64,000 nt of DNA from Podarcis cretensis (Eukaryota), in NCBI GenBank assembly GCA_951804945.1, contig OX638149.1, forward strand, positions 83,018,001-83,082,000, written 5' to 3'. The notes beneath the pieces were generated by a model. It did not search any database and was not told where the DNA came from. It worked only from the letters and a program-made list of their open reading frames with translations. Of this stretch, positions 96 through 59,963 are shown piece after piece. A program made the position numbers and the translations under genes. Every line of letters begins with the position of its first letter. Within the stretch, counting starts at the first letter, position 1.

Positions 96-713
96 TATTA
101 TCATTAACTATACAGCAGTTCTGCAACCTAAAACTATACTTGTTAAGGAGGATGTTAAGTTCTACTAAATTCAAAAAGGGCTTACTGCAAATAAAAATAC
201 ATATGTTTTAAAGGTAGAGTATACATTAGTTATACTCTTGATCAGCCTGACTGCTAGAGTTGGAATGTTTATATGGTGAACATGACAATTTTTAGACCCT
301 GCTCATAGCTAAAACTGTATTTCAGGTTGTCAGTGACAAATCCTTCTAGGACAATCACCTTTTCAGGACAGAGGTTGAAATATTACATGTACTGTGCTGC
401 TGTGTGTGGTCCAGAGGGCAGCAACACGAGAACAAGCATTTTCTGTGACGGCTCCCCACTTGTGGAATGTTCTCCCCAAAGGGGCTTGCCTGATGTCTTC
501 ATTTACATATCTTTAGGCATCAGGTAAAAACATTCCCGTTCTCCCAGGTCTTTGGGCCTTTTTAACTGTGTGCAGGGGGGTTATTGTTTTTGTTTGTTAC
601 TATGTTGTATATTTTTAAGTTTTTATATTGTGAAATGCCCTTCATAAGACACGCCCCCCAAGTCACATAAGAGCCAATAGCAAGTGACCCCAAAATACAG
701 TGTTTTGCTTTAC

Positions 714-2143
714 CTGTTGCCCAGTAGTAGATATCCCAATCATTGCTGGGCTCATTAATCAGGCGATCATAAAGATCCAGCTGTTGCTCATTCATTCGAT
801 TCAGATTCTCTTTGGCAAAGAAACTATGGAAACAATAAAACAGCATACTGGGAAAACCAGACGAGGTAGAAAAAAATACCACAATGTAATAAATATACTA
901 CATTCTGGCTATGCAAGTGTCAGAAATTTCTGCACACCCATTCAGACAAACAAAAGGCATTATTACAGTTCAAGGTCCAGGCAAAAGCAATGAGGAGCAA
1001 GGCTACTGAGGGGTGTGGCCTTTGGAGAAGAGTCCCAGAAGCTGGATAGAGGGGCTCAGAGGGGAGACCACATTCAGCCCCAGGTTCCCTCTACCAGTTC
1101 AAGATAAACCAATGTCTGACTATACCCTTGATAACCAAGAGAAAACAGAATGGACAATCTTCTCCTTTTTCCTCTATAAGCTGATTTTCAATATTTCATA
1201 ACAACGCTTCCTAGCGCTGTCCTTGGATAAGGGTATTTCCAAGTGCAAGGAGAGAGCAACATTTCTTTTTTAAAAAATGTAGGTTTATAAAATGATGCAC
1301 AATATGGAGAAAGTAGACAACAATGATTTGTACTCACTGTTTTTCAGCTAAATTTCCAGTTGCATTTTATCAGTTTAAACTGCCCAGAGAACATACGGTA
1401 GTTTCATCATTCTTATCTCTGTTTTATATACATTATAAAATGAAATAACAATTATAATATTAATATTAAATATTTTAATATTTAAAGACTCGATTCTGAA
1501 TATGGTTACCAGGAAACAAGCCCAAGTTGAAAGCAAGGAGGAGGTTTAGGAAAGGCAGAACAGAAGGCGACGGCTCACCTGAGCAGGAGGCAGTTCTCCA
1601 GCATGCCCCTCTTGCGGCTCTCGTACAGCAGCCTCGCGCGCTTCCTCGCCGGGGCTTCGTGGGGCCGGGCCTGCCAAGGCGGCAGAGGGATCTCCAGCAG
1701 ATCCCGCCCGGAGTCGGAGGGAGAGTCCCCGCGGTAGCAGCACTTCGACGAGCGGAGGACGCAGGCAGGGAGCAGAAAGAGGCGCTGCGAGACAAACAGG
1801 CAGGGAAACGGCGTAAGGCAACCAAGGGCAGCAGCAGCAGCAGCAGCGTCCGACCCACCACTCCGTTACTAGGCGAACGCGCCGGAGCCCCTGCTGTTGC
1901 GACGGTTAGGGAGTCGGACTAGGACTCGGGGAGGCCGTGACGCTCAGGGGGTGACCTTGGGGGCCAGTCGCTGCCTCTTAACCTCAGCCTAGCCCACCTC
2001 GCAGGGTTGGTGTTGTGGGGCCAGGAAGCCTATGCGCTTCACCCTGAGCTCCTGGGAGGCGAAGCGGGGGACACGAATTCAACAAATGCCTAGATACATA
2101 ACGTGCATCTCCCTTTACTCACGCGAACGCTCAGCGCCGCCAT
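714..2143 (-). CDS. SDHAF2: Succinate dehydrogenase assembly factor 2, mitochondrial (exons 1-3; last exon left of window)
   Basis: Exons 2143-2123 (MAALSVR), 1784-1579 (...[53 protein letters not shown]) and 823-714 ([36 protein letters not shown]). All junctions are GT-AG and in phase. Carries the Sdh5 RGMLE motif and lies head-to-head with CPSF7 as in mammals. Confidence 0.96.
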
Positions 2144-18200: not shown

Positions 18201-20290
18201 ATGATAAGTATTACTTGAATGCTCAGGCAAAATTTATTTCACTGAAAGTGAACAATGTAAAATACACTCAATACATTCTAAGACCATAAATGAAATGTTC
18301 TCAGTTCAGTTTGGACACACTGCTATTGTAAATTGTAGTTAAAGTTAAGCATTGATTTAGCATGTTATGCTGCCTGTCCATCTGACTCATAATCAGTGCA
18401 TGATACAACTATCTCTGTCAACTCAGCACACAACACTTAAGAGAGCTCTTACAGGTCTCTTGGCCAAGACTGGGAATGCCCAGTTCCAGAGCAGGAAGGT
18501 ATCTCTCTAGATACCTCAACATTTGCCCAAATCAACCCAAAAATCTGTGTGCACATACCAATGAAACCTACCTTTTCTCACATGTATGAGATAAGAGTTC
18601 TGATATTTGGGCAAGGTGTTATTGCAATTCAGAGGCATGATGGTTGACATGGGTGTACTTACTGGAAAGCGGGGAGAGGGTTATTTTGTCAGAAAACTGA
18701 CCTACCCAACTGCTACAGTGTTGAGCGCTTTTCCTCTTCTGTGATGTCTGACAGGGGTGCCTCCGAGGGCTCATTCAAGGGATTCCTCCGACTTGATAGA
18801 TGGCCGAGCCACTCCGACAGAGAATGCTGTGCCGCCGCCACGCATTGAGAAGCCTCCTGTGTTGCCTTTCTTCAACCGCCCTCCTTCTGCGCTTCCTCTC
18901 ATGGGGCTGCCACCTCCACCCATACCACCCCCTCCTCTTTCCTCAAGCTTTGGGGTTCCCCCTCCCCCTCCAGGAATCCACTACCAACACCTCATGCCCC
19001 CTCCCCCTCGACTTCCTCCACACCTCACTGTGCCACCTCCTGGGGCCGTGCCACCTGCGCTGCACCTCAACCCAGCCTTCTTCCCCCCACCCAATGCAGC
19101 AATGGGGCCCCCGCCAGACACCTATAACAAGACCTCTGCAGCATACAACCACAGCAGGTGAGAGCAAGCCCATTCCCGGGAATCTGAGAAGAAAAAAAAA
19201 ATCAAAACTAAGCAGTGCAAAGAACAGTAGCTAAGCCTCTTGTTTAGCAAGGCTGCAGACCTAATTCTCCAAGGGCTTAGTTATTTTATGCAAAGAGTGA
19301 TGGATCGACTAGACATGAAACCACTTCTCGTTGGTGGTAGAAAATGTCTCGTATAGCTCTAGAGCACGACAGCTGACAACTTGGTTCTTAAAGGATGCTA
19401 CTTAATGTCTGCTTTGGGGGGGGGCAGTACCTGGTCAACCACACATTGCTGTTTTGAAAGGCCTTGAATTGCCATGTCTATGAATAAGGAACTGTGTCAT
19501 AGTTCTGCTTGAAGCTGTTTATCCTCTGTGTGTGATGGGTATGTGTTTGTGTACTACAGTCGGGAACTGGGCCCATTGCCACCTCCTGTCAGTGAAGCTG
19601 AATTTGAAGATATCATGAACAGGAATCGAGCAATTTCCAGCAGTGCCATTTCCAAAGCTGTGTCTGGTGCCAGTGCAGGTAACCAGAGCTGGCTTTTGCT
19701 ACCTCTTGCCATTTCTCACTCCTGGTCTCATTCTTACCATGCCGCCTTTGCTCTGTTATATTGCAGGAGACTACAGTGATGCCATTGAGACCCTGCTCAC
19801 AGCCATCGCTGTGATTAAACAGTCACGTGTCGCAAATGATGAGCGGTGTAGTCTCCTTATCTCTTCACTCAAGGATTGTCTTCATGGCATTGAAGCCAAG
19901 TCTTACAGCATGGGCACCAGCAGCAGCTCCTCCAGGTGAGCTTCAGGCACAGTTATTGCCAAGTCATCCAGCTACTGTCACTCATGTTGCTGATGAGCAA
20001 GTCTCAGTTGTGCTCTGGTCCCCTTCCTGGGCTTTGTACAGCCAGGTAGGAATAAGTGCTTTTGGTAGGGGAAAGGGTCTTGTTACAGCTTGCCAGTAAC
20101 TGATACCTCATTTTTTTCCAGAAAACGGCACCGGTCTCGGGATAGATCACCCAGTCGGTCTCGTGAGAGCAGCAGGAGGCACCGAGACGTCGTCCATAAT
20201 GAAGATCGGCATGAAGACTATTTCCAGGAAAGAAGCCGGGAGCATGAGCGACATAGAGACAGGGACAGAGAAAGAGACCGACATCACTGA
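2991..20290 (+). CDS. CPSF7: Cleavage and polyadenylation specificity factor 7 (CFIm59), 460 aa
   Basis: Coding exons 2991-3044, 12029-12247, 13160-13263, 14517-14662, 18755-19157, 19560-19678, 19767-19935, 20122-20290 total 1383 nt, in frame. Starts [18 protein letters not shown]; contains an RRM ([14 protein letters not shown]...NGQSKGYAEV), a Pro-rich region and an RS/RD/RE tail. Non-coding exon 1 ends at 2551 and exon 2 starts at 2934. Confidence 0.97.
4660..4840 (+). mobile_element. Old tRNA-derived SINE (Squam3-like)
   Basis: CAGTGGCAGAGCA...CCCTGGAGA...TGCCAGTCAGT...GGTCTGACT; related to copies at 7310 and 17430. Confidence 0.55.
6152..6430. mobile_element. PIF/Harbinger-like MITE
   Basis: TIRs GGTCACATTCA...TGAATGTGACC flanked by TTA on both sides; a related decayed fragment near 49040-49210. 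Confidence 0.65.
7310..7497 (-). mobile_element. Old tRNA-derived SINE (Squam3-like)
   Basis: GGAACATGGGAAGCTGCCTTATACTAAATCAGACCATT... is the reverse complement of the same family. Confidence 0.6.
16360..16429 (+). promoter_or_regulatory. Candidate intronic poly(A) site in CPSF7 intron 5 (three TGTA plus AATAAA)
   Basis: TGTA at 16360, 16370 and 16383; AATAAA at 16424-16429; flanking AATAAA near 16207 and 16503. Confidence 0.5.
17430..17651 (+). mobile_element. Old tRNA-derived SINE (Squam3-like)
   Basis: GGTAGAACAATTGCTTTG...TAATCCCTGGCATC...TGCCAATCAGTGTAGAC. Confidence 0.55.
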
Positions 20291-24430: not shown

Positions 24431-27400
24431 ATGACATACTCACTAGAATTTGGCCTTGTTAATGCGGCCAACCGGTACCTGACTGCTGAACCTTTCCGTT
24501 TCCAGGTGGCAGCCACAGGCAAGCAACTGAAGCCTCGCCAGTTGTGGGTACTGCAGTTTGTGAGCCCACAGGGAGCTGGGGCAGCTGGCCCAGGAGAAGG
24601 GGCTGGCCAAAAGCTTCACCTGATCAGTGCACTGAAACGCTACTTGGCGGCTGACGCAAATGGAAAAGTCACCTGTGACCAGGACAAACCAGGGCCTCAG
24701 ACCTTCTTTCTCTTGCATCAATATCCAGATGGCAAGGTGCTGTCTCTCACCCAAGCACAAGCATCCTATCTCTCAAGTGTAGCTTATGTCCAATATTATC
24801 GGGCTGGAATTCTGGACAAAGAGGGTTGGGTGTGGTTGGGTGGGTGAGACAGAGGGCAGAAGGTAGGAAAACAATGCTTAAAGTTGCCTCAATAGGGCCT
24901 CAAAACTATTCCGCTATTGCCCAAATGTGGGCCTCTTGTTTTGCTTACAAATGTTTTTTACAATTAAGAGGAAGAAATGAGGGCAGGATTGTGCTCGATT
25001 TGCAGACTAGTTTGCTGTGGTGAGAAGCAGGGCCTTTTCTTAGTGTGCAAGTTTTTAGATTCTTACGGGTAAGTCCAGGCAGCAGATTCCTGTAAAGTGC
25101 ATCAGGAAGAGTGTAAAATGTCCCTGGACTTCCCCCACCCCACCCCCATGGTCTCCTTGGGAAGCCAGTCACATGAGCCAAAGCTCTTTGCCCCTGTCGG
25201 CCAAACAGTATGATAGTCAGCCACTATGGGCTGAAGGGGAGAGAATGTGTCTGAATAGCTTATTTGAGTCCCTGTGCCTGGTGTATCCTTCAAGGTGCCC
25301 TAGCCACTTCCCATCCACAACTGGAAACAACTGTTGCACAATGGAACTTAGGTGATCATGGCAACTCCATAAGCCAAAAGGTGTAACATAATTGGTGTGA
25401 TGATACCTGAATTTTATTCTGCCGTGTTCTTTGCTCATTGAGAGTGTTCCTGCTTTTCTTGTCTTGGGCAATGTAGCTGACCAGACATCCTTCCCTCCCT
25501 GCAGGTGTCCTTGCAAAATGAACAGTCCAAGCGCTACCTGGGTGGAGCAGAGGAGAACGTCACTTGCTTTGCCCAGGCTGCCACCGAAACTGAAAAATGG
25601 ACCCTCCACCTGGCTGTGCACCCCAATGTTGCCATGTACAACCCCAACAGGAAGCGTTATGTGCGGTGTGATGATAAAACTGGGGTGCTGCGCTGTGACC
25701 GTGACATGCCCTGGGGAGCTGAATCAGTCATCACTATCTACTATGATTTCAGAGGTGGGTGGTGGCATTTTCCTATTTTGTTTTCAATTGATATGTGCAT
25801 TTTTCTCTCTAATACTGTAACACACATCTCCCCCCCCCTTTGTTGGGGGAGCGTGTTAAAGAAGCAAAACATTCTGCTATAGGGTTACACACACACACTT
25901 ACAGTAATTCCTGTTGCAGATGAGGACTTATAGCTACTATACTAACAAGAAAGTTGCTTCTTCTGAACTAAGGATTGTTTAAAGTTTTCTGTTATCCTCT
26001 CCAACTATGGAGCAGACACCTGGGGTAAGTCTGAACACCTGGAAAGACTTGAGAAATTTGAGAGATGGAGGAAGTCTGTACCGGTCACAGGCTTTCTCCT
26101 CCCACAGTGAGAAAGTTGCTACTTTATTCTACAGATGTTTGTCTGCTTGTGATTTTACCTGTACATGAGGATTTCTAAGTGCTACAGGTGGGTGGGGTGG
26201 CCTGGGAAGGCAGTAAGTGCTTCTAAGTGGAAGGTCTTAATTCAAAAAGTTTGAGTGACACTGCCTTATTTACACATCTCTATCCAAAAGCCACCCAAGC
26301 ACCTTCTAAGATAGTCCTCTGTTATTGATGTGTGAAAAAGTTCAGTTTGAGTCATTTGCATCTCCTCCAATAGGTCTGGAGTCCAATGGTGAGAGAAGGC
26401 AATTTTCCCCATACATACCAGGTGAATTCAAATTCTGTTTACCCAAGAAGTCACTGTGGCTGGCAGGAATTTTGGTTTCCTTAACATCATTAATTAGCTT
26501 GGGTAATTCTTAGAACTACTAATTGCCCTATGCAAGACTTTCTGGTAAGTTAGACACCAGTGCAAACTTTCCAAATAAGACAAGAAAGGGAATTGTCTGT
26601 ACAGAGAAGTTTCCAAGTGCAAATCCTCTTTCCTGACCGTATTGATGTTGGAGGTTCCCCACTCTCTCACACACACTTTTAAGTGAAATTGCACACTAGG
26701 CTAAAGAATCTAATACAACCAGTTTTTAAAACACATGTAGTGTGGATAAAGGTGTGTATTAGTGCAGATGAGAACATTATTTCAATCCCAATCTTAGCCT
26801 GCCTGTGCCCATGGCACATCTCACTATACCTGGGTTGGGGCAATGGCCTCTAACTTTATCAAGCACACACGTAAACCCCCAAAGTAACTATGCAAGAAAA
26901 ATAGGGTGTAATCTACGAGGAAACAAATGCAGTGTCAGCACCACCAACGCTGTACAAAGCTGAGACCCAATGAACGTCAACTTGCCTATCAGAACAAAGC
27001 ACAGGGGGCTGTTTACACACATGTACAAATGATATATGAGATTCTGGGCAAGGGAAATACAATGGGAAATGTTAAGGGCGAACAGGACTAGGGTACTCTA
27101 AAGGGTTGGTGTTTGGAACTGCAGGCAGGGTGGGCCTGTGTGGCAATTCTGCAGTGAAACAAGCATCAACTCTGATGCTACTTTGTAAGACAACTGATTT
27201 GGAGATTGTTTTCCAGGACTAAACATCAAGCTGCTGTCAACCTCTCATTTCTCTCGCCTTTGTCTCCAGCAAAGAAGTATGGATTGAGGAATGGGGCTGG
27301 CAAACTGTTGGCTTCCAATGGCTCACTGGTGCCAGATGTTACCCCACAAACGTTGTACTCCCTGGAGGTGCATGGCGGCTTGGTCGCTCTGCGGGATGAG

Positions 27401-30400
27401 GAGGGAAAGTACTTGACTGGGCGAGAGGGTAGCATGAGAACCGTAAAGATGGACAAACCTGGACGGGAGGAACTCTTCAGCATGGAATCCAGCCCTGCCC
27501 AGGTCTCTATGCGCTCTTCTTCTACTAACAAGTTTATTTGCTGCAGGCCAGGTAAGTCAGGAGAAAGCAGCACTATCTATATTGCATTGCACTTTGTGAA
27601 CCCTCTGAAGCTGATTGGCTGTTCCTGTCTGATGAGATAGAATGTTTGTGACCATTCCACCTGCTCAGAAAATGAGGCACGGTGGTAGTCCACATTCTGC
27701 AAGCAATGGGGCAGTTGTCAGTTTGGTTGGGTAAAACTGAGATAAGACTGACTCAGGAGGCAGGGTGAAGGCTGGGAGGAGTTCTTAGGAGGTAGGTAAG
27801 CTTAGATGCTGGGACCTCAGAGGCAAGATGGATGAAGAGAGGGTGCAGAAGTAAGAAGCAGGAAAAGTGCACATACAATTGAAGTGCAAGGATCCAGTAA
27901 GATTATGGTCCCTGAAAAAACCCACAGCATTTCTTATTAAAAGTGGTGTGACAGAAGTGCTAGGGAAGCTTGCACGTGACGTTTTGTGCTCTTAAACCAG
28001 CCTGCCTCCAAAGATAAAGATAGGAAGGTCCAAATGATCCTAGGTCAGTTGACACACAGACAATGCCCCCATTCTCTGCACCATGTTTTCCTCTTTCAAT
28101 CCACAAAACACTGATTTCAGCCTGCAAGGAGTGGGCAATGGCATATGTAGGAATGCTGACCTAGGGTGTTTCTTCCCTGCCCCCTGCAGGTGCTGATCTC
28201 TATGCCAATGCTATGGCTGTTGGCAACACAGAGATCTTCCAGGTGCTGTTTGATGACACCACAAAGAAGGTCTGCTTCCGTAGCCACAGCGGCGCATATA
28301 TGTCCTTGGTGAGTGTGCCTGCCACGCGTTACGAGGAACAGCAGCGATCAGACAGGACCTAACTATGTTTCCTAACCACGGGGAAGGACGGCAGCTCATA
28401 GGTGGTAGAGCACCTGCTTTGCATGCAGAAAGCCCCAAGCTTTTTTCAGCCACAGCCACTCATTCCAGTCTTGTCCCCAACCTCCTTCCGACTATATTCT
28501 ACAATGGGCAACACTGAGACTAAGGAGGGAGGAAGCTGACAGGCAGTCCCACCCCACGACTGGTTGTGAGAATGTGGGGACTGATCAAGGGCAGAGTGAG
28601 GATGGTGGGGCAGGGCCCCTTTTGCCCTAGTGGATCAGCCTCCACTGGATACATCTGTGCCCAGATTGTGGTGCACCAACTTAATCTGGAATTCTTTTAA
28701 ATGTGAGCAAGGAGGTGGGTGAGCTGCATCCTCGACACTTGGCTGCGAGCATTCACAAAAATTGTGGCCTGCTTCAAAAAACAAAACAACTTAAGCTTGA
28801 AACTTGATGTAGTAGAGGCTTTGCCACCTCAGGTGTTCACCAACTCTCCCCAGATGAAGAAGATATATCTGTGCCGTGTGTGTATTAATACAGAAAGGCA
28901 GGCTGCAAATCAAGAGGATAATAATATAGCAAGCAGGGAACTGATAAAATGAGGCTTGTTAAATAGCAGTAGATAGCTCTTGGTCCCGGACTTGTTTGTT
29001 AATGTTAGTAAGGATTGTCTCAGTCCTTTTCCAAAACATTTTTGTCAACTTTAGTGCGGGTGGGGGGAGTTACTCTATTCTACAAAGCAAAGCAGGGCAT
29101 TATACACAATCCTCCTTGTGGAAAAGTGAAAAATTGTTTTTTGTACACTGAGGATGGAGAACCTGTGGCTCTCGAGTTGTTGTACTCAAATGCCTATTGT
29201 CCTTGATCATTGGCTGGCAGTTATTACTCCAACATCTTCAGGGCCTCAGGTTTCTCATCCCTGCCACAGATGAAATATGTAAGAGTGCAGTAGGAATGCA
29301 CAACTTCCTGAACAACCTCTTAAGAGAAAGCTAACTGCTTAAGCCTGGAGGGCTGGAGACATCTTTTTCAGGTCTGCTATTCACTTACCTGGGAGTAAAA
29401 CTTACTTATAAGTAGAGTTGAAGGTGATCTTCTGGCTGCATTGTTGTTCATGGTGTGCACATACACTATCTGCTGTGGACCATGGTCAGAAATTTTACAG
29501 ATTTTTGTTGTGCTTCAAAACTTATACTACATCTAACATACCATTTAGATGTAGTACCTTATACTACATCTAACATACCATTTAGAAATCTTAATAGTTT
29601 GGCTTCAGTCTGGGCTATGGTTCACATAGTGCAACTTGAAGTGTGAAGTCAACAAGAAAGTGGCTTTGAATAAAGCCAAGGTCCACCACCATCCCTATCT
29701 TGCTGATGCTAGAAACCCTCCACTTTTGGAGGTAACTACTGCTGGATGCGGGTGGCGCTGTGGGTTAAACCACAGAGCCTAGGACTTGTTGATCAGAAGG
29801 TCGGCGGTTCGAATCCCCACGATTGGCTGAGCTCCTGTTGCTCGGTCCCTGCTCCTGCCAACCTAGCAGTTCAAAAGCCCGTCAAAGTGTAAGTAGATAA
29901 ATAGGTACCGCTCCGGAGGGAAGGTAAACGGCGTTTTCGTGCGCTGCTCTGGTTCGCCAGAAGCGGCTTAGTCATGCTGGCCACATGACCCGGAAGCTGT
30001 ACGCCGGCTCCCTTGGCCAATAAAGCGAGATGAGCGCCACAACCCCAGAGTCTGTCATGACTGGACCTAATGGTCAGGGGTCCCTTTACCTTTACTGCTG
30101 GACTAACCTCCCTGGTATTGAGATGCTCATGCATTGCTGTACTCTTGTGTTGCATCACCCACCACAATGGGATTCTCAGTTGATGCAGCACCCAATATCT
30201 TCCACTGAAAATATATCAACATGGATCTCAGAACATAGCTGATAAAGGGACTGCAGCAGGAGGTTTCTATCAGACAAAGTAAGCTGAAAGCACAAAAAGC
30301 ACTTTCCAACGAATGCATCCTGTCTTTTGCAGGGTCCTAATGACTGTATTAACAGCAACACTAAACAGGACAGGAATGTCTGGTTCGACATCCAGTACCA

Positions 30401-32401
30401 AGACCAAAAGGTGTGTCTCCGCATAGCAGACAAGCAAGTGTCCATGCGGCCCAATGGACAGCTCCTGGCAATTCCCAAAGCTGCAGGTACAAGTTGGTAG
30501 AGAGCTTCTCTTACAAGCACCAGGGCATCAGTGTGGACAGGTGAAGACAGCTAGGGTGGGAAGAGAGACTGCACACTACCAGCTGCAAATTAGCTTTAGG
30601 TAGTTCTAGGGGAAAGGAATGGAAGTGACAGCCTTGCCCTAAGTCCCTAGATAGCCCTCTAGAGGAATAATGTGGGGAAAGTGTATGCACAGAAACCAAG
30701 CTGTCCCTGGATATAAAATTGGAACATGGGGAGCCAACCTTAAGCTCATCCCATGAAATGGCTTTTTAGACACCTCAAGGGCTTCTTATTAGAAACCAGC
30801 AACCAAAACTTTCATAATCTTGCTCCTGTAAGATGGAATGAGTTCTGTTTACACTCTCTTCCTTACACTTTGGAGTAGCTAACATCACTACAAATACAGC
30901 CTAGATGAAAGAGAAAAAAAACACCCTAAGACTCACTGAAACACTGCCCCTCTGTGCATATAATCCTGGCCCCCAGAACTGCATACCAAGTAGGTTGACA
31001 CTGCTTCTGTAATATGATCTGGGAAGCAGTCAGAGAATGAGTTCCAGTTTGGGGAGAACCACCATCAGAAATAGCTGTGCAGTTGTCCATAGTGGTTACT
31101 TGAATGAACTTTGGGGCAAATGCCACTGACAGTAGAAATCGGGATAAAACCCAAGGGAAGAACAGTATTTGAAGTCCAAGCCATTAAAAGCTTTCTGTGC
31201 CATAAGCAGCACCTTGAATCAAGTAAGAAAGACTAGAGGGAGACATTGTGAATTCTGGGCCCCTGTTACAACACTCAGCCTGGCTTCTCAGTGTGGGGCG
31301 ATTTCTCCTGATCTTTAGCACTGAGGTTGACTTTCCCTGGGGAGCTGATTCCCTCTTGAGAGCAAAAGGAAGGGTGGCAAAATAGTTCTCTTTGAAAGCC
31401 AGGTGCGGCCAATGCTAAAGGTTTCCCTTGTACCTTCAGGGAAGAGTGAAGATTTCCTGCTGGTGCTGGTGAACCGGCCACTGCTTGTCCTGCACAGTGA
31501 TGCCGGCTACGTGGGTCTGTGTTCTGACATGAGGAAGTTGGAAGGGAACTGCGTCAGCTATGTTGCCAGCAGCCTGTCGCTCACTGAGGAAGGCTACTAC
31601 AACTTCCAAGTTGGTTAGTATGTGTCCAGGTGGGACTAAGTATATTCCAAGGGGTTGCGGTCTCCTAGTATCTGTGTTGCGAGAGAAACATGACCTACTC
31701 ATAAATGGGAGCTGCCATCAAAGGATTTTTATAAAAACAAGCCTAGTTTATACGTAGCCATAAGAGGGAGCCAAAACTTGCTTTCCCAAACCAAAACAAT
31801 GCAAGAGAGCGCATCATCACTATTTCCCCCCCTTTGCCATTTGTTTTGCTCCATGACCCCTGGACAATAGTTTCCTAGGCCCAATTAAGGATAAACTACT
31901 GTTCAGGTTGGATGGCCATCTGTCATGGTTGATTTAGCTGTGATTCCTGTGTTGCAGGGCGTTGGACTAGATGACCCTTGGGTCCCTTCCAACTCTATTA
32001 TTCTAGGTGTCGGTCATGTTTTCACTTTATACATGGTTTCTTTCTAAACCATACCTAGTATTGCCATGACAAGCACATCCTAATTACCTGTGATTCTTTT
32101 ACCTTGTAAACATTAGAGAGATCCAAGAGCTGGTCTTGCCACGCCTCTACCTTCCCTGACCCTCACCCTTCCTTCCACTAATTCTGCCACTTGACTTGCA
32201 GGCAGCAAGTACTGGGCTCTGGATAACGATGGACAAATCTTGGTAAACAGTGACCGTCCCAGCAATTTCACCATCCAGTTTGCATCCTCCAGCTGCCTGA
32301 TCATCAAAGCACCCAACAACAAGTTTTTTGTGGCTGAGCAAGGAGGCCGACTATGGGCAGGGGCTTCAGACGCATCTGGAGCAACACTGTTCCATTTCTG
32401 A
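24431..32401 (+). CDS. Fascin-family actin-bundling protein (four beta-trefoil domains), 494 aa, divergent paralogue
   Basis: Exons 24431-24736, 25505-25754, 27270-27551, 28190-28308, 30333-30486, 31440-31613, 32202-32401 total 1485 nt with no internal stop; all GT-AG and in phase. Fascin motifs: EFGLVNAANRYLTAEPFRFQV, RYLAADANGKVTCD, KWTLHLAVHPNV..NRKRYV, DRDMPWG, VALRDEEGKYL, PGREELF, NGQL, LVNRPLLVL, KYW. Kozak ACCATG; AATAAA at 32428. Confidence 0.93.
29744..30092 (+). mobile_element. Sauria SINE, full length, in fascin-like intron 4
   Basis: tRNA-like head (GGTGGCGCTGTGGG...GGTTCGAATCC), ACCTTT-type tail, TSD TACTGCTGGA (29737-29746 and 30093-30102). Confidence 0.85.
31920..32005 (+). 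mobile_element. CR1 LINE 3' end fragment
   Basis: GGTTG...TTGGACTAGATGACCCTTGGGTCCCTTCCAACTCTATTATTCTA, typical of a CR1 terminus. Confidence 0.6.
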
Positions 32402-32820
32402 GAGCATCTGACCTTGCTCTTCCCACCAATAAACTTTTTCTGTGTGGGCTTACTTCATGCTTATCTCAACTCATGCCCAATTGGCCCATGCGTTAGACCT
32501 CTTGGAAATAACCCTTCCTCCATAGATCCTCCCTCACACAGGGCATACTTGAACTCTAAATGAAAGCTCTGCTACCTACAGCAGACCCAAGCCAGGACCC
32601 TTGAATGTGAATTTCCTTATGCAAAAACTTTCTGTGCCCATGAGGTTCCTTCTGAACTGCCTTCATGCAGTTAGGATGATTTGCTTGCAAAGCCTCAGTA
32701 ATCTTAAAGATGTATACCTCTCTTCAGCCCAAGAGGGGTCCCCCATGCTTCTAGGAGCACTGTTGTTCTCCCAGTGGACCAATGTTTGTCTGAAGCTCCA
32801 CATAGCTACAGTAGTTTAAA

Positions 32821-33441: not shown

Positions 33442-36400
33442 TCAGTAAGAGTCCAAGCTGCAGAAAATAGAGAGCGAAACGTGAGGATCTTAGAAACAGC
33501 GACAGCAAATACCTCGGCCTTCTTACCCAATTTACAGAGGAACAGACTGAACACCTATTCCAAGGATTGGGAACCTGCAGCCCTCCAGATGTTGGAATCC
33601 AACTCCCACCATGGCCAATAGTCAGTGATGATTGAAGTTGTCTAGCAACATCTGGGGAGCCCATGTTCTATTCCATTGATTCCCCTGTTTGAAGAAATAA
33701 GCCAACCAACATAAATATATGATAAGCCACCTGTGCAATTTAGCATTACATCACTGAGCCTGAATCAATCAGAAAAAGAACGTCAAACCTGCATGTTCTC
33801 CCACAACAGCCAAGGAGGACTTCAGCAGGATTTTATGTTCTCTATTTAATTCTACTTTTAAAGAATCCTAGCTTAGCATTATGTCTGAACCAGGAATCCT
33901 GGTTTAAAACTCTGCTAAGTGCCATAATAAATCAACTTCACACTATGGGTTATGAATTTGGCTTCTTAAACTGATCAGAGTTACAGTATACCAATTTCCA
34001 GAGAGTATAACAGAAAGGTTTGCATTCAACACAGCGCTAAGAAGAAAAATTTCTCCTTGTGCAATTGAACATTTTCGCCACCTGCATGCCCCTTAAATCT
34101 GCTCTGGGAATGGCATAGGGCACAGAAGTCCCACTGTACTAATATTAATCCTTGCACTAATGTGGATACTTGGTTGAATATTGTCCAGTCTTTGAGGGAC
34201 ATTAAAGGCTAAGCTAACACACTTATTACAGCTTAAGCTAGTCCATGAAAACTTATGCCATAACTAATCTGATGCTTTTTAATGTGCCACAGGACTTTTG
34301 TTGTTTTAAACCAGGATTCTTGGTTCCAACATGATGCTAAATGGGGATTTAAAAGTGAAAGGAAATCCTTCCAAGTCCTCCCAGCCATAAAGGAAGAGGA
34401 TATGGGGACTCACACACGAGCCTGAAACTTCACTTAGCACTAAACCCAACATTACCAGTCAGTGTCTTAAAAAACAAAATCTAATCAATGCACATAAAAA
34501 AATATTTCCCTAAAATACCATAATGGTAGGCAAGTAAAGTACCTGGAGAAGGCAGCCAGAGTGAGAACACCCAGTAACAGCTCCACAGCATAGAAGAGGA
34601 GGAGGATAGCATTAAGGATGGCCTCCAGCCGCAGAGCATAAGTCTGCAGCAGCAGATAATAGGCTGCCATCACTGCTGCTGGAAAGGTTAAAGCCAGACT
34701 GATAGCAAGTGGCACTTTCCGTTGACAGAGGTTCCCTTTTGAGCCTGCCATACACAGAAAATATGAAAAAGAAAATGCATAGACCTGTTCAGCATAAAAG
34801 CCACAATATTTGGAATCTGAGGGCACAAAATGAATAGTTCTACTTTTCAGGGATCAGTTCTCATTTAACTAAATAAGTTAAAAAATTGTCCAGTAGCACC
34901 TTTGAGACCAACTAAGTTTGTTCTGGGTATAAGCTTTTGTGTGCATGCACACTTCTTCAGATACACTGAAACAGAAGTCACTAGACCTTTATATAGAATG
35001 GGAGGTGGGGTGGGGTATTTCTCCGAGGGGTAGTAGGAGATGGGTGATTGGCTCAATGGGTATGGTAAACCTGTTGACGACTGTGAACAATTTTTTAATT
35101 TATATATATATGAATGGGTGAATGGGATGAATGGGATCTCATATTTCCACCCACATAATGTTGTCTTGCCTCCTACCTACTCCCGAATTAGGGAATGTAC
35201 CACAAAGCCCCTTTTTCAGCCTTTGGGCATCATTTCATTGGAGGCACCTATTCCAGTTCAGCAGAATAATTAGGAAGGCCTGGAATGATGGGAGTGAAGG
35301 CACTGTCAGCAATTTACACTCTGCTCAACTACTCTACTCTCAAACACCTTTGCTGTTGGAGAAGCAGAATTTATCAATGAGTGAACCACAACAACAACAA
35401 TAATAAATTTTATTCATATCCTGCCCATCTGGCTGGGTTTCCCCAGGAGTCATCTTTTCAGGTCAAGTGCCATCAAAGATGCTCACAAAATGGCAGGTGA
35501 GTGCACTACTCGTAAGAACATTTTTATTGAATACTCACCAAAAAATATCCGGGTCACCTCAATCCCAAGATAGAGAAAAAGCATAATCAGGTCCAAAGCC
35601 AAATTGGCAGAGGGGTAGGGCAACAGGAGTCCTAAGTGGGTGCACAAATGGACATATGCATTAAGAGAACAGCAAAGCAACAAACACTGGGACATGAATG
35701 GTTCTGAAAAAGGCTTTGAACTCTCAAGCAGCTAGGTGAGAAATAAATAATTACACTATCCACTTTGTTCTTTCACTTTCTTCAGGTGAGAGCCACAAGA
35801 TAAATGCGTAAAAAACCCCTTCTGCAGGCAACCCAAACACATCATCCCTTCAAAGACTCACCTTTATAGACAAATATGAAAATCTCCAGCAGAAAATATG
35901 TTGCGTAATACCAGCCATTCAGGAACAGGAGAATCTCCAGAGGGGTGGAGGAGAGCTGGCGATCTACGGGGTGAAACCAGAACATGATTATCTATGGGGT
36001 ACACATTTTGTGTTCCACTCTCACCTTCTCTCAAAGAGGAGCAGTACAAACTTTCTTGAGAGACTATATAAGGGTTCATGTACAATTCAACTTATCCCCC
36101 TGCTTTCCAGCTGAATCAGAGCCAATGGCAATTCTGGTTTTCCCAGGACTGCCATTTGTTCCAATCTATCCCAAGGTGGGTTTTCGGAAATGAGCAGGGC
36201 AAAGGGTGTGAGTCAAGCAGAAACTGCTGCTAAGAAGCCAAGCAGCAATGAGGTCTCAGTTCTGTTCTAAACTCAGTCAAGAGACCGGTGCGAGGTGAAG
36301 ATTGTCAAAATGGAAGCCCTGAGATGACAACAGCCATTAGGGGACGCCAATATTTGTACTGGGCTGGACAAGTGTGCAGCCACTCTCCATTTTGCCTTTC

Positions 36401-36996: not shown

Positions 36997-37450
36997 CTTC
37001 CATCGCCATGGAAACCGCTACGCAGGAAACCCACTTCCGGCGGAGCTCACGGCACGAAAGCGGGAGAGGGCGGAGTGGCGCGCAGCGTTCGCGGAGGTAG
37101 AAAGGTCTGGGTTGGCGAGGCGCGCGCTCGCTCCCTCGCTCCCAGCACGTTAGACCGAATGGAAGCCGAGCAGAGCCGCTCTATCCCTCGCCTCTTTGTG
37201 CCGGAAGACCCGTTAGAAAGGCAAAAAGCTCCACGCGATACCGGATATCAGAGCCGCGTCTCTTTGGGGCGGAGGCCCAGATTCCGAGCGGGGACGGCGT
37301 CGCCTCGTCTCCATGGTAACCCATGAATTCTACCCGAGCTTCCTCCGCGCGAGTTGTGGAGGCAGGAAATAAACACAGGCGCTCCGTTCTCCCGCCTTCT
37401 GACAAGGAGCGACACCTATTTCTTTGCTTGTTATGTAACGGCCCCGTTTT
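36600..37450 (-). promoter_or_regulatory. TMEM216 CpG-island promoter with two RFX X-boxes
   Basis: ATCGCCATGGAAAC at 37002-37015, GTCTCCATGGTAAC at 37307-37320, ETS CACTTCCGG near 37032, YY1 AAGATGGCG over the ATG, E-box GTCACGTGAC at 36928-36937. Confidence 0.8.
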
Positions 37451-41600: not shown

Positions 41601-44600
41601 TACATTGAAAAGATGTGAAGACAGCATGAAGGGGAAATGTTTTGGTGCATTAAGCAACAAGAGAAACCAGAAAATTGGGCGGTGGGGGGGATCTGAAGGC
41701 ACAGCTTCCAAATCATAAGAAGTGCCAGTAAACCAAGTCAAGCAAATGTTAATAACCACTCAACTTACACATAATCACATGTACACAACAAGCTTGCCCT
41801 CAGTAAAAACCATAAGAGGGCAACTGTGATGCAGGATGCAATACATTAATTTAGGGTGCTTTGTGTGATTTGCTATCACATGAATACAGTATTAACAAAA
41901 CATACAATAGACCACTTAAATGACAGCTTAGGCAATTATTGCAAGGCCAATCATTTTTCATGGATCTCAGACACAGATATCTAAAAAGAATAAATTAATG
42001 TGAGCAGAAGTCAGTGTAACAAGATGTCCGAAGAAAGCAAGAATAATGGAGCACACTGTAAATTATGCTCATCAAGAACAAAAGAAAAGTGTGCTTGTTC
42101 AAAAAGATCTTAGAAAAAGAAGTGATTGGTATGTATGCAAGAAGTCCAGGGTGTGATGTTGAAGAACAAAGGACAGCTGAGAAAAACAGAACTGCCCAAA
42201 GGGGAAAACAAACACTGGTCAAAGAAGATTGTAAGGCCTCCTGTATCCAGCTAACCATATCAATAGGAAATTCTAGCTGTATACTGACAAGATTCTGAAA
42301 GGTTGGAAGGTGAATTAGCATGCCAAGCCACAATAATATATTGCATTATAACAGCTGCAACAGCTATGACCCTTTCCAGTTTATCCTGTTTCATCAGACG
42401 AGCTTTTAAATGTCTTAACTGAAGGCAGCCCTCTTTAGGGAAGTTTTTAATGTCTAATGCTGTATTGTTTTTAATATTCAGTTGGAAGCTGCCCAGAGTG
42501 GCTGGGGAAACCCAGCCAGATGGGCGGGGTATAAATAATAAATTATTATTATTATTAAATACTATTTGGTTTATCTAATCCAACTCCTTCCCAGGTCTTT
42601 ATTCCTGGGAACTCCTCAGCCAATTCAATGAGGCAGCTACTGTTCTACAAATTCTGCACACATTATTTATCACACCGAAGTTGGTACAAAAACCTGAGCT
42701 TCTTTTAAAAATATAATGGGTGTTGAAACAAATTTGGAAATCCACAGGTGGTGTTTGCAAGGGATTCCTAGGGTTTAATAGAGAGAACTTCTATCTCTTC
42801 CACAGCTACCTGTCCTAACCTAATCTGTTAGTTTCTTCTATTCATCCCTGTTCTTGCACAATATTTCTTCCATTTACCATACTGCTTTTTTGTTACATGC
42901 AGACCTCCATATTAAAAAACTACACAGTGCAGAACCTGGGGGGAGCATAAAATAAAGTTTGTTTCAATGTGTGTTTTCTTTGCTTGCACAATTACTCCTA
43001 TATTCAGAATTTGGGCTTCCTTGCTAACCAGTATAAGCAATCCTCTCCTGCCTTACCATGACCCAGATGTGGAAGGATATGCTCAAACCAAGGTATGTTG
43101 CTGACAAGACAATGGTCCCTTTAAATTTCTGGAACAGAAGATTAACCAGGCCAGCCTGGAAGACGAAGGTATTGAAGAACATGAGGAAGATGATGATGAC
43201 ATTGAAGAGGATGGCAATATCCTGAATGCTGTAAGACAGGCAAACATTTTAATGAGACAGAGATTGATAGATACCTTATACACAGAGGTGTACCTAGGTT
43301 CCCTTGCATCCTTGCCAAGGAGCTATATATCATCACACACACATCCTGGTCCCTTGCACAATTGCATTTCTCCACCAAAGCACCCACAGGAGCCTGCATG
43401 CTTTGCCTAAAGGTAAAGGTAAAGGTACCCCTGCCCGTATGGGCCAGTCTTGACAGACTCTGGGGTTGTGCGCCCATCTCACTTAAGAGGCCAGGGGCCA
43501 GCGCTGTCCGGAGACACTTCCGGGTCACTTGGCCAGCGTGACATCGCTGCTCTGGCGAGCCAGAGCCGCACACGGAAAAGCCGTTTACCTTCCCGCTGGT
43601 AAGCGGTCCCTATTTATCTACTTGCACCCGGAGGTGCTTTCGAACTGCTAGGTTGGCAGGCGCTGGGACCGAGCAGCGGGAGCGCACCCCGCCGCAGGGA
43701 TTCGAACCGCCGACCTTTCGATCGGCAAGTCCTAGGCGCTGAGGCTTTAACCCACAGCGCCACCTGCGTCCCAGCATGCTTTGCCTAGCCACCCATAATA
43801 TTGAAAGAGTGGCCCGGCCCAGGGAGCACACGAACAGACGAGCAAGTTCCTAGCCACTCCAAGCCAGAGTGGAGAGGCACAATTTTTGTGCACACACTCC
43901 AGGCCTGCACCCTTGGCAGGGGCTCACCTAACCAACTCCTAGGTATGCCCCTGCTTGTGGCTCTCCAAATACTACTGGACACCAGCTCCCCACCATCACC
44001 CATGGTCAGAGATAATGGGAGTTGTGGTCCAGCAACTTTTGGAGGGCCACAGACTCCCCACAACTGTGGCTAAAGCCTAGTACTTGGAGAACAAAAAGCA
44101 CATTAACATAGCTGCAGAAGTTTTCACTGTCCATGCTGCCAACTGAGACATTAGTCCACCAATTGCAGAGGAAAGGGAACCCCAAAACCCTTGCTAGAAG
44201 ATTACAATGGAAATAATACCTGCTGCAGCTACCTCTATTTCCCCCCTGCTTATCACTCATTCTCATAATCTGGGGGTAGAACTTTATGTAGTGGCAATTG
44301 AACTAATAGCTGCTAATACCCACAGAGAAAATATAGAATGAATGGATTATAATAGCACCACCCTTTTAAAAATATCATTCAACACAATATAGCCTATTAA
44401 CTGCCGATGTTTCAGGAGTAGGGAAAGAATAATAATTTTCTTGGTATCTTTTATTCTACTTCATTGCTCCATTTGTCTCTTCTCTGGCACTCTCTTCTTC
44501 CCATTTTCCTGAATGAGAGTGTCCCAAGAAGAGTAGAAACAAACAGAAAGGGCATTCCTGTGCATGTTTACTCAAAAAAGTTCCACTGTGTTCAATGTGG

Positions 44601-56983: not shown

Positions 56984-57726
56984 GGACGCAGGTGGCGCTG
57001 TGGGTTAAAGCCTCAGTGCCTAGGGCTTGCCGATCGAAAGGTCGGCGGTTCGAATCCCTGCGGCGGGGTGCGCTCCCGCTGCTCGGTCCCAGCGCCTGCC
57101 AACCTAGCAGTTCGAAAGCACCTCCGGGTGCAAGTAGATAAATAGGGACCGCTTACCAGCGGGAAGGACGCAGGTGGCGCTGTGGGTTAAAGCCTCAGCG
57201 CCTAGGGCTTGCCGATTGAAAGGTCGGCGGTTCGAATCCCTGCGGCGGGGTGCGCTCCCGCTGCTCGGTCCCAGCGCCTGCCAACCTAGCAGTTCGAAAG
57301 CACCTCCGGGTGCAAGTAGATAAATAGGGACCGCTTACCAGCGGGAAGGTAAACGGCGTTTCCGTGTGCGGCTCTGGCTCTGGCTCTGGCCAGAGCAGCG
57401 ATGTCACACTGGCCACGTGACCCGGAAGTGTCTCCGGACAGCGCTGGCCCCTGGCCTCTTAAGTGAGATGGGCGCACAACCCCAGAGTCTGGCAAGACTG
57501 GCCCCTACGGGCAGGGGTACCTTTACCTTTTACCTACCAGCGGGAAGGTAAACGGCGTTTCCGTGTGCGGCTCTGGCTCTGGCCAGAGCAGCGATGTCAC
57601 GCTGGCCACGTGACCCGGAAGTGTCTCCGGACAGCGCTGGCCCCTGGCCTCTTAAGTGAGATGGGCGCACAACCCCAGAGTCTGTCAAGACTGGCCCGTA
57701 CGGGCAGGGGTACCTTTACCTTTACC
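56984..57726 (+). mobile_element. Two nested Sauria SINEs (inner copy 57166-57534)
   Basis: Outer TSD TTTAAGAACAGAAA (56970-56983 and 57727-57740); inner TSD TACCAGCGGGAA (57154-57165 and 57535-57546). Confidence 0.9.
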
Positions 57727-59657
57727 TTTAAGAACAGAAAAACAGCACAATTCTGAAGGTGTCTGCGGCCTTACCATTACTCATCCATCTTCTTAAAGGG
57801 ATGGAGTTTCAATGAGTGTGTCCAGATGAGGGTCTCCTACTGCTATCAATCATGACTCCCATTATAAGCAGAATTGCAACCGATTATCCACCTGCCTTTG
57901 GTGCTCTGATGCAGTGTCTGCATCTCATTATAGTTTGTCCACATGGTGGGCATGACATAACTGTATGGAGAAGGTTATATCCTTCTGTTTCTTCACCTGT
58001 TGGTTGGCTGTCACATGTCTCCTTTTCCTCACATTTTGAAGCCGGTGCTTCTTAGCACCATTTTAACCCCCTGCTTTGTGTGCCCTCCTGTGTGAATGTG
58101 TTTACACAATTAGCACAATTGCAAAAAACTTAAGAAGTAAAAAAGAGTGCTTACAGCTTACTTCCAAGTAAACATCATTAGAGATCAGGCTCTAAATCCC
58201 GTGGATTTCACTTGAGAATGACTAATCTCTACTTCAGTCAATTTTACAACCAGATCTAATTGGACAATCCAGTGTAGCCAGTTCAACAACCCAGCTAGAA
58301 AGCATGCTAAATCGATTCCCCGCCCCCTTGCTTATTGGTTGCAGTATTTTACCACAGCACAATTGTTAAATGTTTTTAATAGTGTCTGCAGCACAGGGGC
58401 TGGAGGATTGTGGCCCTGCAGGATTACTGCTGAAACCTACACCTTGGTACTTGGAAGTTAGCACTATCTTAATGCAGTTTACTAATAAAATAGCTAACTG
58501 AAGTGTGTAGGTTGAAGAAACCTCATTCTAGGGAACAATTTATTAAGACTGAAAGCTGGTAGAAAGGAGTTGGGGTGTAGGACATGAAATGATTTTTAAC
58601 CAGAAGTACATGGCAGGCCTTAGAGAAAGGAAAAGTCATCTCCAACATGTCAGCAACCTTCCTCAGGGAAAACAACTCCCAGTGTGGTTCAGATGTGACT
58701 TTTCCTGTGCACAACTGAAAGGAGATTGCTGTGCACTTCTGTTCTTTCCCTCTTTAACAGTAAGAAAAAAGGTGGAAGAAGCAATGGGAAAGCATGGGAT
58801 GATTATACTTGGCGTACATCCAGATGCCCTGTAAAACTGCATGGTGGAGGCATACCAAATACACATTAAAAGCTTCAGAGAAGGCATAATGAACACATAT
58901 ACTGAAAGCCTCTTAGGGAAGCAGCCAGTGTGTGCCATGATCTATAAGCAAGGACAATAATAATAATAATAATAAAATTTTATTTATATCCCGCCCTCCC
59001 CAGCCGAAGCTGGGCTCAGAGCGGCTAACAACAATATTGCCATTCAATGTACCATTGTTATCTTTCTAGTTGGAGTCATTCTATCAACCCCATTCATTTT
59101 GTTTTCACTCATCGTTAGATTAGCTCTGTAGTTTATTTTGTTGGTAGACACACATACGCAGCACATATATTTCTACCATAGGACTCTGGTACACCATGGT
59201 GACTGGTAGGATAGAAAGTTAAAGATAGAACCAGAGCCACCCTCCTCTCTGCTGAGTTGTAGAAGCAAGACTGAGACTAAGGCAGCCAGGACCAATCCAT
59301 GGTCTGGATGCTAAAGTAGGATGGCAGGCATTTGGGGCTGACTGGGGGCAGACTGGGACTGGTGGGGCAGTGCCCTGATTCATACCTCCACTGGTGCTAC
59401 ACAAAGGGTTATGCCTTCCTTTTTTCTTTGTTGCAGCTACCACCTAGTAAGAGTTCCTTAATACATCTGGGTCATCTGTCAAAGCGAAGGACACTTTGGC
59501 CTTGCTCTCACATGAGGCTACTTCTTGGTGATTCTACATTGGTAGCAGCCAATGCATAATATGTATTGGGATGCCTTGTCTAGTCTGCAGAATGCACACC
59601 GCTTTTTCAAGATGTCATGCGTTTATGTTTTTATTATATCCTCCTAAATACTTCCTG

Positions 59658-59963
59658 TAAAGTAAAGGTAAAGGGACCCCTGACCATTAGGTCCAGTCAC
59701 AGACAACTCTGGGGTTGCGGCGCTCCTCTCGCTTTATTGGCCGAGGGAGCCGGCGTACAGCTTTTGGGTCATGTGGCCAGCATGACTAAGCCGCTTCTGG
59801 TGAACCAGAGCAGCACACGGAAACACCGTTTACCTTCCTGCTGGAGCGGTACCTATTTATCTACTTGCACTTCATGCTTTCAAACTGCTAGGTTGGCAGG
59901 AGCAGGGCCGAGCAATGGGAGCTCACCCCGTCGCGGGGATTCGAACTGCCGACCTTCTGATCA
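59658..59963 (-). mobile_element. Sauria SINE, 5'-truncated
   Basis: Reverse complement of the 29744-type body with tail AAAGGTAAAGG; the start of the head is missing. Confidence 0.85.

Follow-up and report, generated by a model that had tools for sequence, protein, structure and literature searches.

What kind of fascin is encoded between CPSF7 and TMEM216 in the genome of a lizard, and can it be assigned to one of the known members of the family? Reviews count three vertebrate fascins (PMC7698196), of which FSCN3 is a very divergent testis fascin with 27-29% identity to fascin-1 (PMC2377175, PMC7698196). Work on fascins in filopodia and metastasis, in photoreceptors and hair cells, and in the heads of sperm has been extensive and has always started from this three-gene premise. 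A stretch of 64,000 nucleotides (nt) from Podarcis cretensis (assembly GCA_951804945.1, contig OX638149.1, positions 83,018,001 to 83,082,000 of the forward strand), here called the window, carries a complete fascin gene on its + strand at 24431-32401. This gene is real, expressed, and constrained, and it belongs to an old vertebrate fascin lineage, referred to here as L4, that is distinct from FSCN1 and FSCN2. The question then becomes how L4 relates to the third fascin, FSCN3.

The gene is built from seven exons that join through GT..AG introns with phases 0,1,1,0,1,1. The exons sum to 1485 nt (494 codons), the four split codons at their joints read GCA, GGT, GGG, and GGC, and no stop codon occurs within any exon peptide. 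The first-pass annotation of the window had described seven phase-consistent exons encoding an uninterrupted fascin of 494 amino acids with a Kozak start; splice sites, phases, codon sum, and stop-free peptides all agree with that model, and the start context is ACCATGA, with A at -3. When the window exons were searched singly, exons 1, 2, and 3 each exceeded the cut-off for the Pfam family Fascin (PF06268; 44.3, 23.5, and 37.2 bits), and exons 4 and 7 matched weakly. Against human fascin-1 in the PDB, exon 1 aligns to residues 11-112 and exon 3 to residues 185-270. Over its full length, the window gene was represented by two database orthologues that are nearly identical to it, P0165 and P0160; these align to fascin-1 residues 10-493, giving full-length colinearity and bearing out the earlier report of an end-to-end alignment with fascins.

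Transcription and splicing of the gene are visible in four runs of one study from a close relative of the window's lizard (X1-X4). These runs hold 20-30% of the sequence words of the locus, approximately the share of the locus that is exonic, whereas other, DNA-like runs hold 91-95%. Contigs assembled from X1-X4 were compared over window positions 26520-32519, and the transcripts are 95-99% identical to the window. Spliced contigs are present in X2 and X3, where their depth is 213-643, and in X4, where it is 33. Once cut shifts are allowed for, their joints fall exactly at 27551/28190, 28308/30333, 30486/31440, and 31613/32202 in these three runs; in an X3 contig, the end of exon 2 directly precedes exon 3 (in the loose letters before position 27268). 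Exons 3-7 as first modelled are thus matched by junction contigs, with exon 2 abutting exon 3, and the introns of the gene uphold the view that it is not a recent retrocopy. In X1, a spliced fascin contig was not found over 26520-32519, where only low-depth unspliced pieces were recovered; fascin expression therefore differs strongly among samples.

The 48-nt stretch in intron 2 that could serve as an optional cassette exon codes for 16 residues, GLESNGERRQFSPYIP. The Lacerta agilis model P0165 contains them as 16 additional residues, and snake and gecko models have inserts of 19 residues at the same place. In the predicted structure the cassette residues would fall within trefoil 2, in the loop that connects two of its strands, at approximately residues 184-187. 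The cassette exon is skipped in the readable transcript contig (X3). At the other end of the gene, the poly(A) signal named in the first-pass annotation is present as an AATAAA hexamer, but it may not be the site in use: fascin contigs pass both the hexamer and position 32519, one continuing ~1.3 kb further and another ~0.27 kb further. The 3′ end of the fascin gene may overlap the convergent TMEM216 transcript. Read-through in this direction could be a long 3′ untranslated region, or it could be an assembly merge of the 3′ ends of both genes.

An expressed gene may still be a decaying or non-functional copy, i.e., a pseudogene with a reading frame open by chance, and the loss of several fascin-1 actin-binding residues and of the C-terminal motif, described below, would fit such an explanation. 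However, L4 orthologues are intact proteins of 487-513 amino acids in dozens of species from shark to squamate, and branches among squamates within L4 are short in the more careful of two phylogenetic trees. All six listed coding differences between the window gene and the relative's transcripts are synonymous and lie at third positions, a tally that covers these six only, as at least two more coding differences were counted without listing. Divergence from the same transcripts is ~0.9% in exon pieces vs. ~2.5% in intron pieces. The intact frame of 487-513 residues from shark to lizard, like the synonymous differences, therefore points to constraint. With splicing exact, transcript depth high, and the fold confidently predicted, the pseudogene explanation is very improbable and close to refuted.

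The nearest relatives of the window gene are other lizard genes. Its exons are 99.2% identical to a 'fascin-like' protein of L. agilis (P0165), 100% identical on four exons to the Podarcis muralis Ensembl model A0A670HS48 (P0175), and 83-89% identical to the proteins of other squamates; exon 1 is identical to both P0165 and P0175 at 102 of 102 residues. These identities place the window in a lacertid, probably of the genus Podarcis. L4 members were found in many squamates, in turtles, Alligator, the frogs Ascaphus and Discoglossus, Latimeria, and Acipenser, as well as in many sharks, rays, and the chimaera Callorhinchus. The idea of a retention in squamates, one of two options put forward in the first-pass annotation, is not supported in that form, as turtles, alligator, frogs, Latimeria, Acipenser, and cartilaginous fishes all hold genes of the same clade. 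The database records of these genes are automatically annotated, as 'fascin-like' or 'Fascin' (e.g., XP_074812756.1 from Natator depressus). In the literature searched, no paper was found that treats the 'fascin-like' genes as a distinct fascin subfamily, no use of FSCN4 or fascin-4 was found, and nothing usable was found on a fourth fascin or on a non-mammalian FSCN3.

Elasmobranchs have two L4 copies, which fall into subclades A and B; Callorhinchus is represented in A alone. The stem of subclade B is long (0.36-0.38), and further basic residues of the actin sites (K43, R151, and K358) are missing from its members. Because A and B are sister groups, the two elasmobranch copies represent a lineage-specific duplication and no further ancient paralogue. 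Subclade B was considered as a possible equivalent of FSCN3 and was rejected, since its sister relationship to A within cartilaginous fishes marks the duplication as lineage-specific.

Two maximum likelihood trees, in which L. agilis P0165 stands in for the window gene, place L4 within the family. The first was a quick IQ-TREE analysis of 67 rows under LG+C20 with posterior mean site frequencies, and the second a careful analysis of 44 rows. L4 is recovered with a support of 100 in the 67-row tree and of 100/100 in the careful tree, on a stem of 0.9-0.97 substitutions per site over both (0.97 in the careful tree). In the careful tree, the vertebrate fascins, L4 among them, radiate as a single group (98/94) apart from those of amphioxus and other invertebrates. 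Both trees set L4 apart from the FSCN1 clade (100/98 in the careful tree; frogs and teleosts) and the FSCN2 clade (100/99), as had been proposed when the gene was first placed outside FSCN1 and FSCN2. Grouping L4 with FSCN2 was weakly rejected in an approximately unbiased (AU) test, at p=0.025 and 8.6 log-likelihood units worse. Given the exclusion of L4 from both clades and the AU results, the window gene is no displaced FSCN1 or FSCN2.

We lean, by a little, toward the view that L4 is an ancient jawed-vertebrate fascin lineage, probably separate from FSCN3, and hence a fourth vertebrate fascin. The jawed-vertebrate ancestor would then have had four fascin genes, with L4 most likely derived from the early vertebrate genome duplications and possibly the sister of FSCN1 from those events. 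Its present-day carriers would be cartilaginous fishes, sturgeon, coelacanth, basal frogs, turtles, crocodilians, and squamates, whereas mammals, birds, and teleosts would have lost it or changed it so far that it can no longer be recognised. These losses would be independent, that in most frogs included. A different origin, in which L4 is a relocated and fast-evolving offshoot of FSCN1, i.e., a duplicate of that gene with no independent standing as a genome-duplication product, would agree with the careful tree, where L4 is sister to the FSCN1 clade (88/84), and with the AU test, where L4+FSCN1 is not rejected (p=0.305). However, the FSCN1 clade does not enclose L4, and L4 has members in cartilaginous fishes; any such duplication would therefore predate jawed vertebrates and be indistinguishable from a genome-duplication origin. 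The larger, 67-row data set puts L4 outside FSCN1+FSCN2, and we regard the offshoot explanation as improbable.

More serious is the proposal that L4 is the orthologue of mammalian FSCN3, so that both represent one ancient third lineage that evolved very fast in mammals and was relocated in one lineage. Several points weigh against a separate fourth fascin. The deep position of L4 is unstable, being sister to FSCN1+FSCN2+lamprey in the 67-row tree vs. sister to FSCN1 in the careful tree, and union with FSCN1 stands unrejected. The sequences in both trees were those of FSCN1, FSCN2, L4, lamprey, amphioxus, and other invertebrates, and L4 could simply be FSCN3 as it occurs outside mammals. No L4 was seen in birds, mammals, teleosts, or Xenopus in word-dependent searches, which can miss very divergent kin, and the absence from birds, mammals, and teleosts is to be read as that of word-limited searches. 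Turtle, frog, and lizard queries returned no mammalian L4; the distributions of L4 and FSCN3 may therefore be complementary, which would favour orthology. The elephant-shark member of L4, J3SI32, is named 'fascin-3' in nr. FSCN3 has seven exons and FSCN1 and FSCN2 have five, and the window gene has seven. To these may be added the long branch of L4 beyond FSCN1 and FSCN2, which is where the literature puts FSCN3 (PMC2377175, PMC7698196), and the sharp expression differences among samples, as expected of a tissue-specific gene such as testis FSCN3.

Other evidence, likewise indirect, speaks against orthology with FSCN3. The reported FSCN3 block is GCC1-ARF5-FSCN3-PAX4 (PMC3759438), which differs from the CPSF7-TMEM216 locus of L4; the window gene does not lie in that block, although relocation would still permit orthology. 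NCBI gave the L4 genes no FSCN3 symbol. In human FSCN3, the ancestral W-E-F at the C terminus is preserved, as are basic residues at the equivalents of 389 and 471. Because every L4 member, those of sharks included, has lost these residues, FSCN3 orthology would need several exact reversals. FSCN3 itself was not found among the homologues of the turtle, frog, and lizard-region queries, the first of which was run at a cut-off of 1e-20 that may hide weak hits, nor by a search with an exon-1 representative, a motif search of 235 collected proteins, or in the PDB. Protein language-model features gave a weak lead, with clusters of FSCN1/2 type (0.97) slightly above a fascin-3 cluster (0.96). Taken together, we consider orthology with FSCN3 rather doubtful, though far from negligible, and tentatively infer that L4 and FSCN3 are separate.

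If L4 is indeed a fourth lineage, the textbook statement that there are three fascins would hold only for mammals, and the history of the family would have to be revised to include a further conserved lineage. If it is instead the non-mammalian FSCN3, it would show in its ancestral, slowly evolving state a testis gene that evolves fast in mammals. The matter is of moderate interest to the fields of cytoskeleton and vertebrate genome evolution.

What, then, does an L4 protein look like? An AlphaFold model of the Varanus orthologue, which is 89% identical to the window exons, was computed with a 37-row alignment and reached a mean predicted local distance difference test score (pLDDT) of 90.8 and a predicted template modelling score (pTM) of 0.87. 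The model superposes over its full length on human fascin-1 (3P53, 7ZAU), with template modelling scores (TM) of 0.87-0.91, and its sole disordered stretch is residues 47-53, the Gly/Ala-rich insert of amniote L4. Functional residues of fascin-1 were mapped onto L4 through a HMMER alignment and the family alignment. K22, F29, K41, K43, R149-K150-R151, R271, K353, K358, and R383 are retained or conservatively replaced in L4. Clade-wide replacements affect R389, H392, K359, K464, K471, and the LWEY at the C terminus, all of them conserved from Nematostella to FSCN1 and FSCN2. Sharks included, R389 has become Q/H and K471 V/I, K464 is lost, and LWEY has become F-x-Y/F; in the family alignment, these changes are not found in FSCN1, FSCN2, lamprey, amphioxus, or Nematostella. 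Judged from this mapping, L4 keeps the N-terminal and the second actin-binding residues, and the trefoil-4 part of site 1 is changed.

Two serines of fascin-1 vary within the clade. At Ser39, the protein kinase C site, squamates have Gln, turtles and alligator have Val, and one shark copy has Ile; the serine persists in sturgeon, Ascaphus, and the second shark copy. At Ser274, most L4 members of bony vertebrates carry Cys and most of those of cartilaginous fishes carry Ser. The L4 product is a single chain of ~55 kDa with four predicted beta-trefoils, most likely a monomeric actin cross-linker in which site 2 is conserved and site 1 has been remodelled. We infer that actin bundling of the kind known from fascin-1 is its most likely activity, and that reptile L4, devoid of the Ser39 phospho-switch, is subject to altered regulation. 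With the fold and site 2 kept, the trefoil-4 half of site 1 and the C-terminal motif replaced throughout the clade, and Ser39 not conserved, L4 would offer a natural experiment on the residues needed for bundling and regulation.

CPSF7 and TMEM216 point their 3′ ends at each other, and the fascin gene sits in the space between them (Table 1), inside the interval to which the first-pass annotation had assigned it, with the exon of the CPSF6-like RSLD domain upstream and the Transmemb_17 exon downstream. It is not beside ACTB; its neighbours are SDHAF2, CPSF7, TMEM216, and cytochrome b561. The CPSF7-TMEM216-TMEM138 locus was rearranged early in amniote evolution, and L4 adds a gene to it.

Table 1. 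Exons of the fascin gene and neighbouring features, in window coordinates
Feature	Position	Strand	Remarks
Sdh5/SDHAF2 exon	565-882	-	
CPSF7, last coding exons	18757-19939	+	Proline-rich exon and CPSF6-like RSLD domain; upstream of the fascin gene
Fascin coding exon 1	24431-24736	+	ATG at 24431; 102 codons; phase 0 donor
Fascin coding exon 2	25505-25754	+	250 nt; phase 1 end
Fascin optional cassette exon	26374-26421	+	48 nt, in frame; AG/GT borders
Fascin coding exon 3	27270-27551	+	Joint 27551/28190 in runs X2, X3, X4
Fascin coding exon 4	28190-28308	+	Transcript joints
Fascin coding exon 5	30333-30486	+	Transcript joints
Fascin coding exon 6	31440-31613	+	Donor TTG/GTTAGT; transcript joints
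Fascin coding exon 7	32202-32401	+	TGA stop at 32399-32401; 3′ untranslated region extends further
AATAAA hexamer	32428-32433	+	27 nt past the stop
TMEM216-type exon	34488-34826	-	Pfam Transmemb_17; downstream, convergent
Cytochrome b561 gene	~51300	+	

Control of the fascin gene by RFX through an X-box was considered and rejected, as a scan of the window gave 6 matches vs. 6.0 expected and none at the 5′ end of the gene; intron 1 contains one weak match. Of the matches in the window, the best (GTCTCCATGGTAAC, one mismatch) is at 37307-37320, in the GC-rich region (~36.6-37.3 kb) that separates the TMEM216 exon from the next downstream gene. Two stretches within fascin introns (29744-30095 and ~31905-31980) reach contig depths of up to ~130,000 in all four runs, with many loose ends and odd joints, and look like interspersed repeats present in many transcripts. 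An open reading frame (ORF) at 29871-30191 (-) recurs in nearly the same form at 59617-59967 (+). Another repeated element is seen in the ORFs at 43142-43573 (-) and 57463-57756 (+), which share a long and near-identical translated stretch.

Among known fascins, L4 shares with FSCN3 the position of a divergent 'third' fascin beyond FSCN1 and FSCN2, and both seem to be tissue-restricted; they differ in locus, GCC1-ARF5-FSCN3-PAX4 as reported (PMC3759438) vs. CPSF7-TMEM216. FSCN2 is of the same family and architecture as L4, and sauropsid FSCN2 is 35-38% identical to L4 members; however, it forms its own clade (100/99), and its grouping with L4 was disfavoured (AU p=0.025). Compared with fascin-1 (1DFC, 3P53, 3LLP), L4 is of the same length class and aligns end to end, with E values of 1e-94 to 1e-101 and ~37% identity. 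It is predicted to share the fold of four beta-trefoils (TM 0.87-0.91), and the careful tree suggests that it may be the sister lineage. L4 differs from fascin-1 in forming a separate clade on a stem of 0.97, in the Gln and Cys that squamates carry in place of Ser39 and Ser274, and in the Gly/Ala-rich loop of amniote members, which corresponds to the low-confidence residues 47-53 of the model. The L4 gene, in turn, has seven or eight exons and lies at CPSF7-TMEM216, unlike the ACTB-adjacent FSCN1. Finally, the 'fascin-like' models of reptiles, frogs, and sharks in RefSeq and UniProt are the same gene, recorded as automatic predictions under generic names. Databases thus already list the gene, as a prediction without a name of its own; its recognition as a distinct and ancient fascin subfamily with its own characteristic substitutions would be new.

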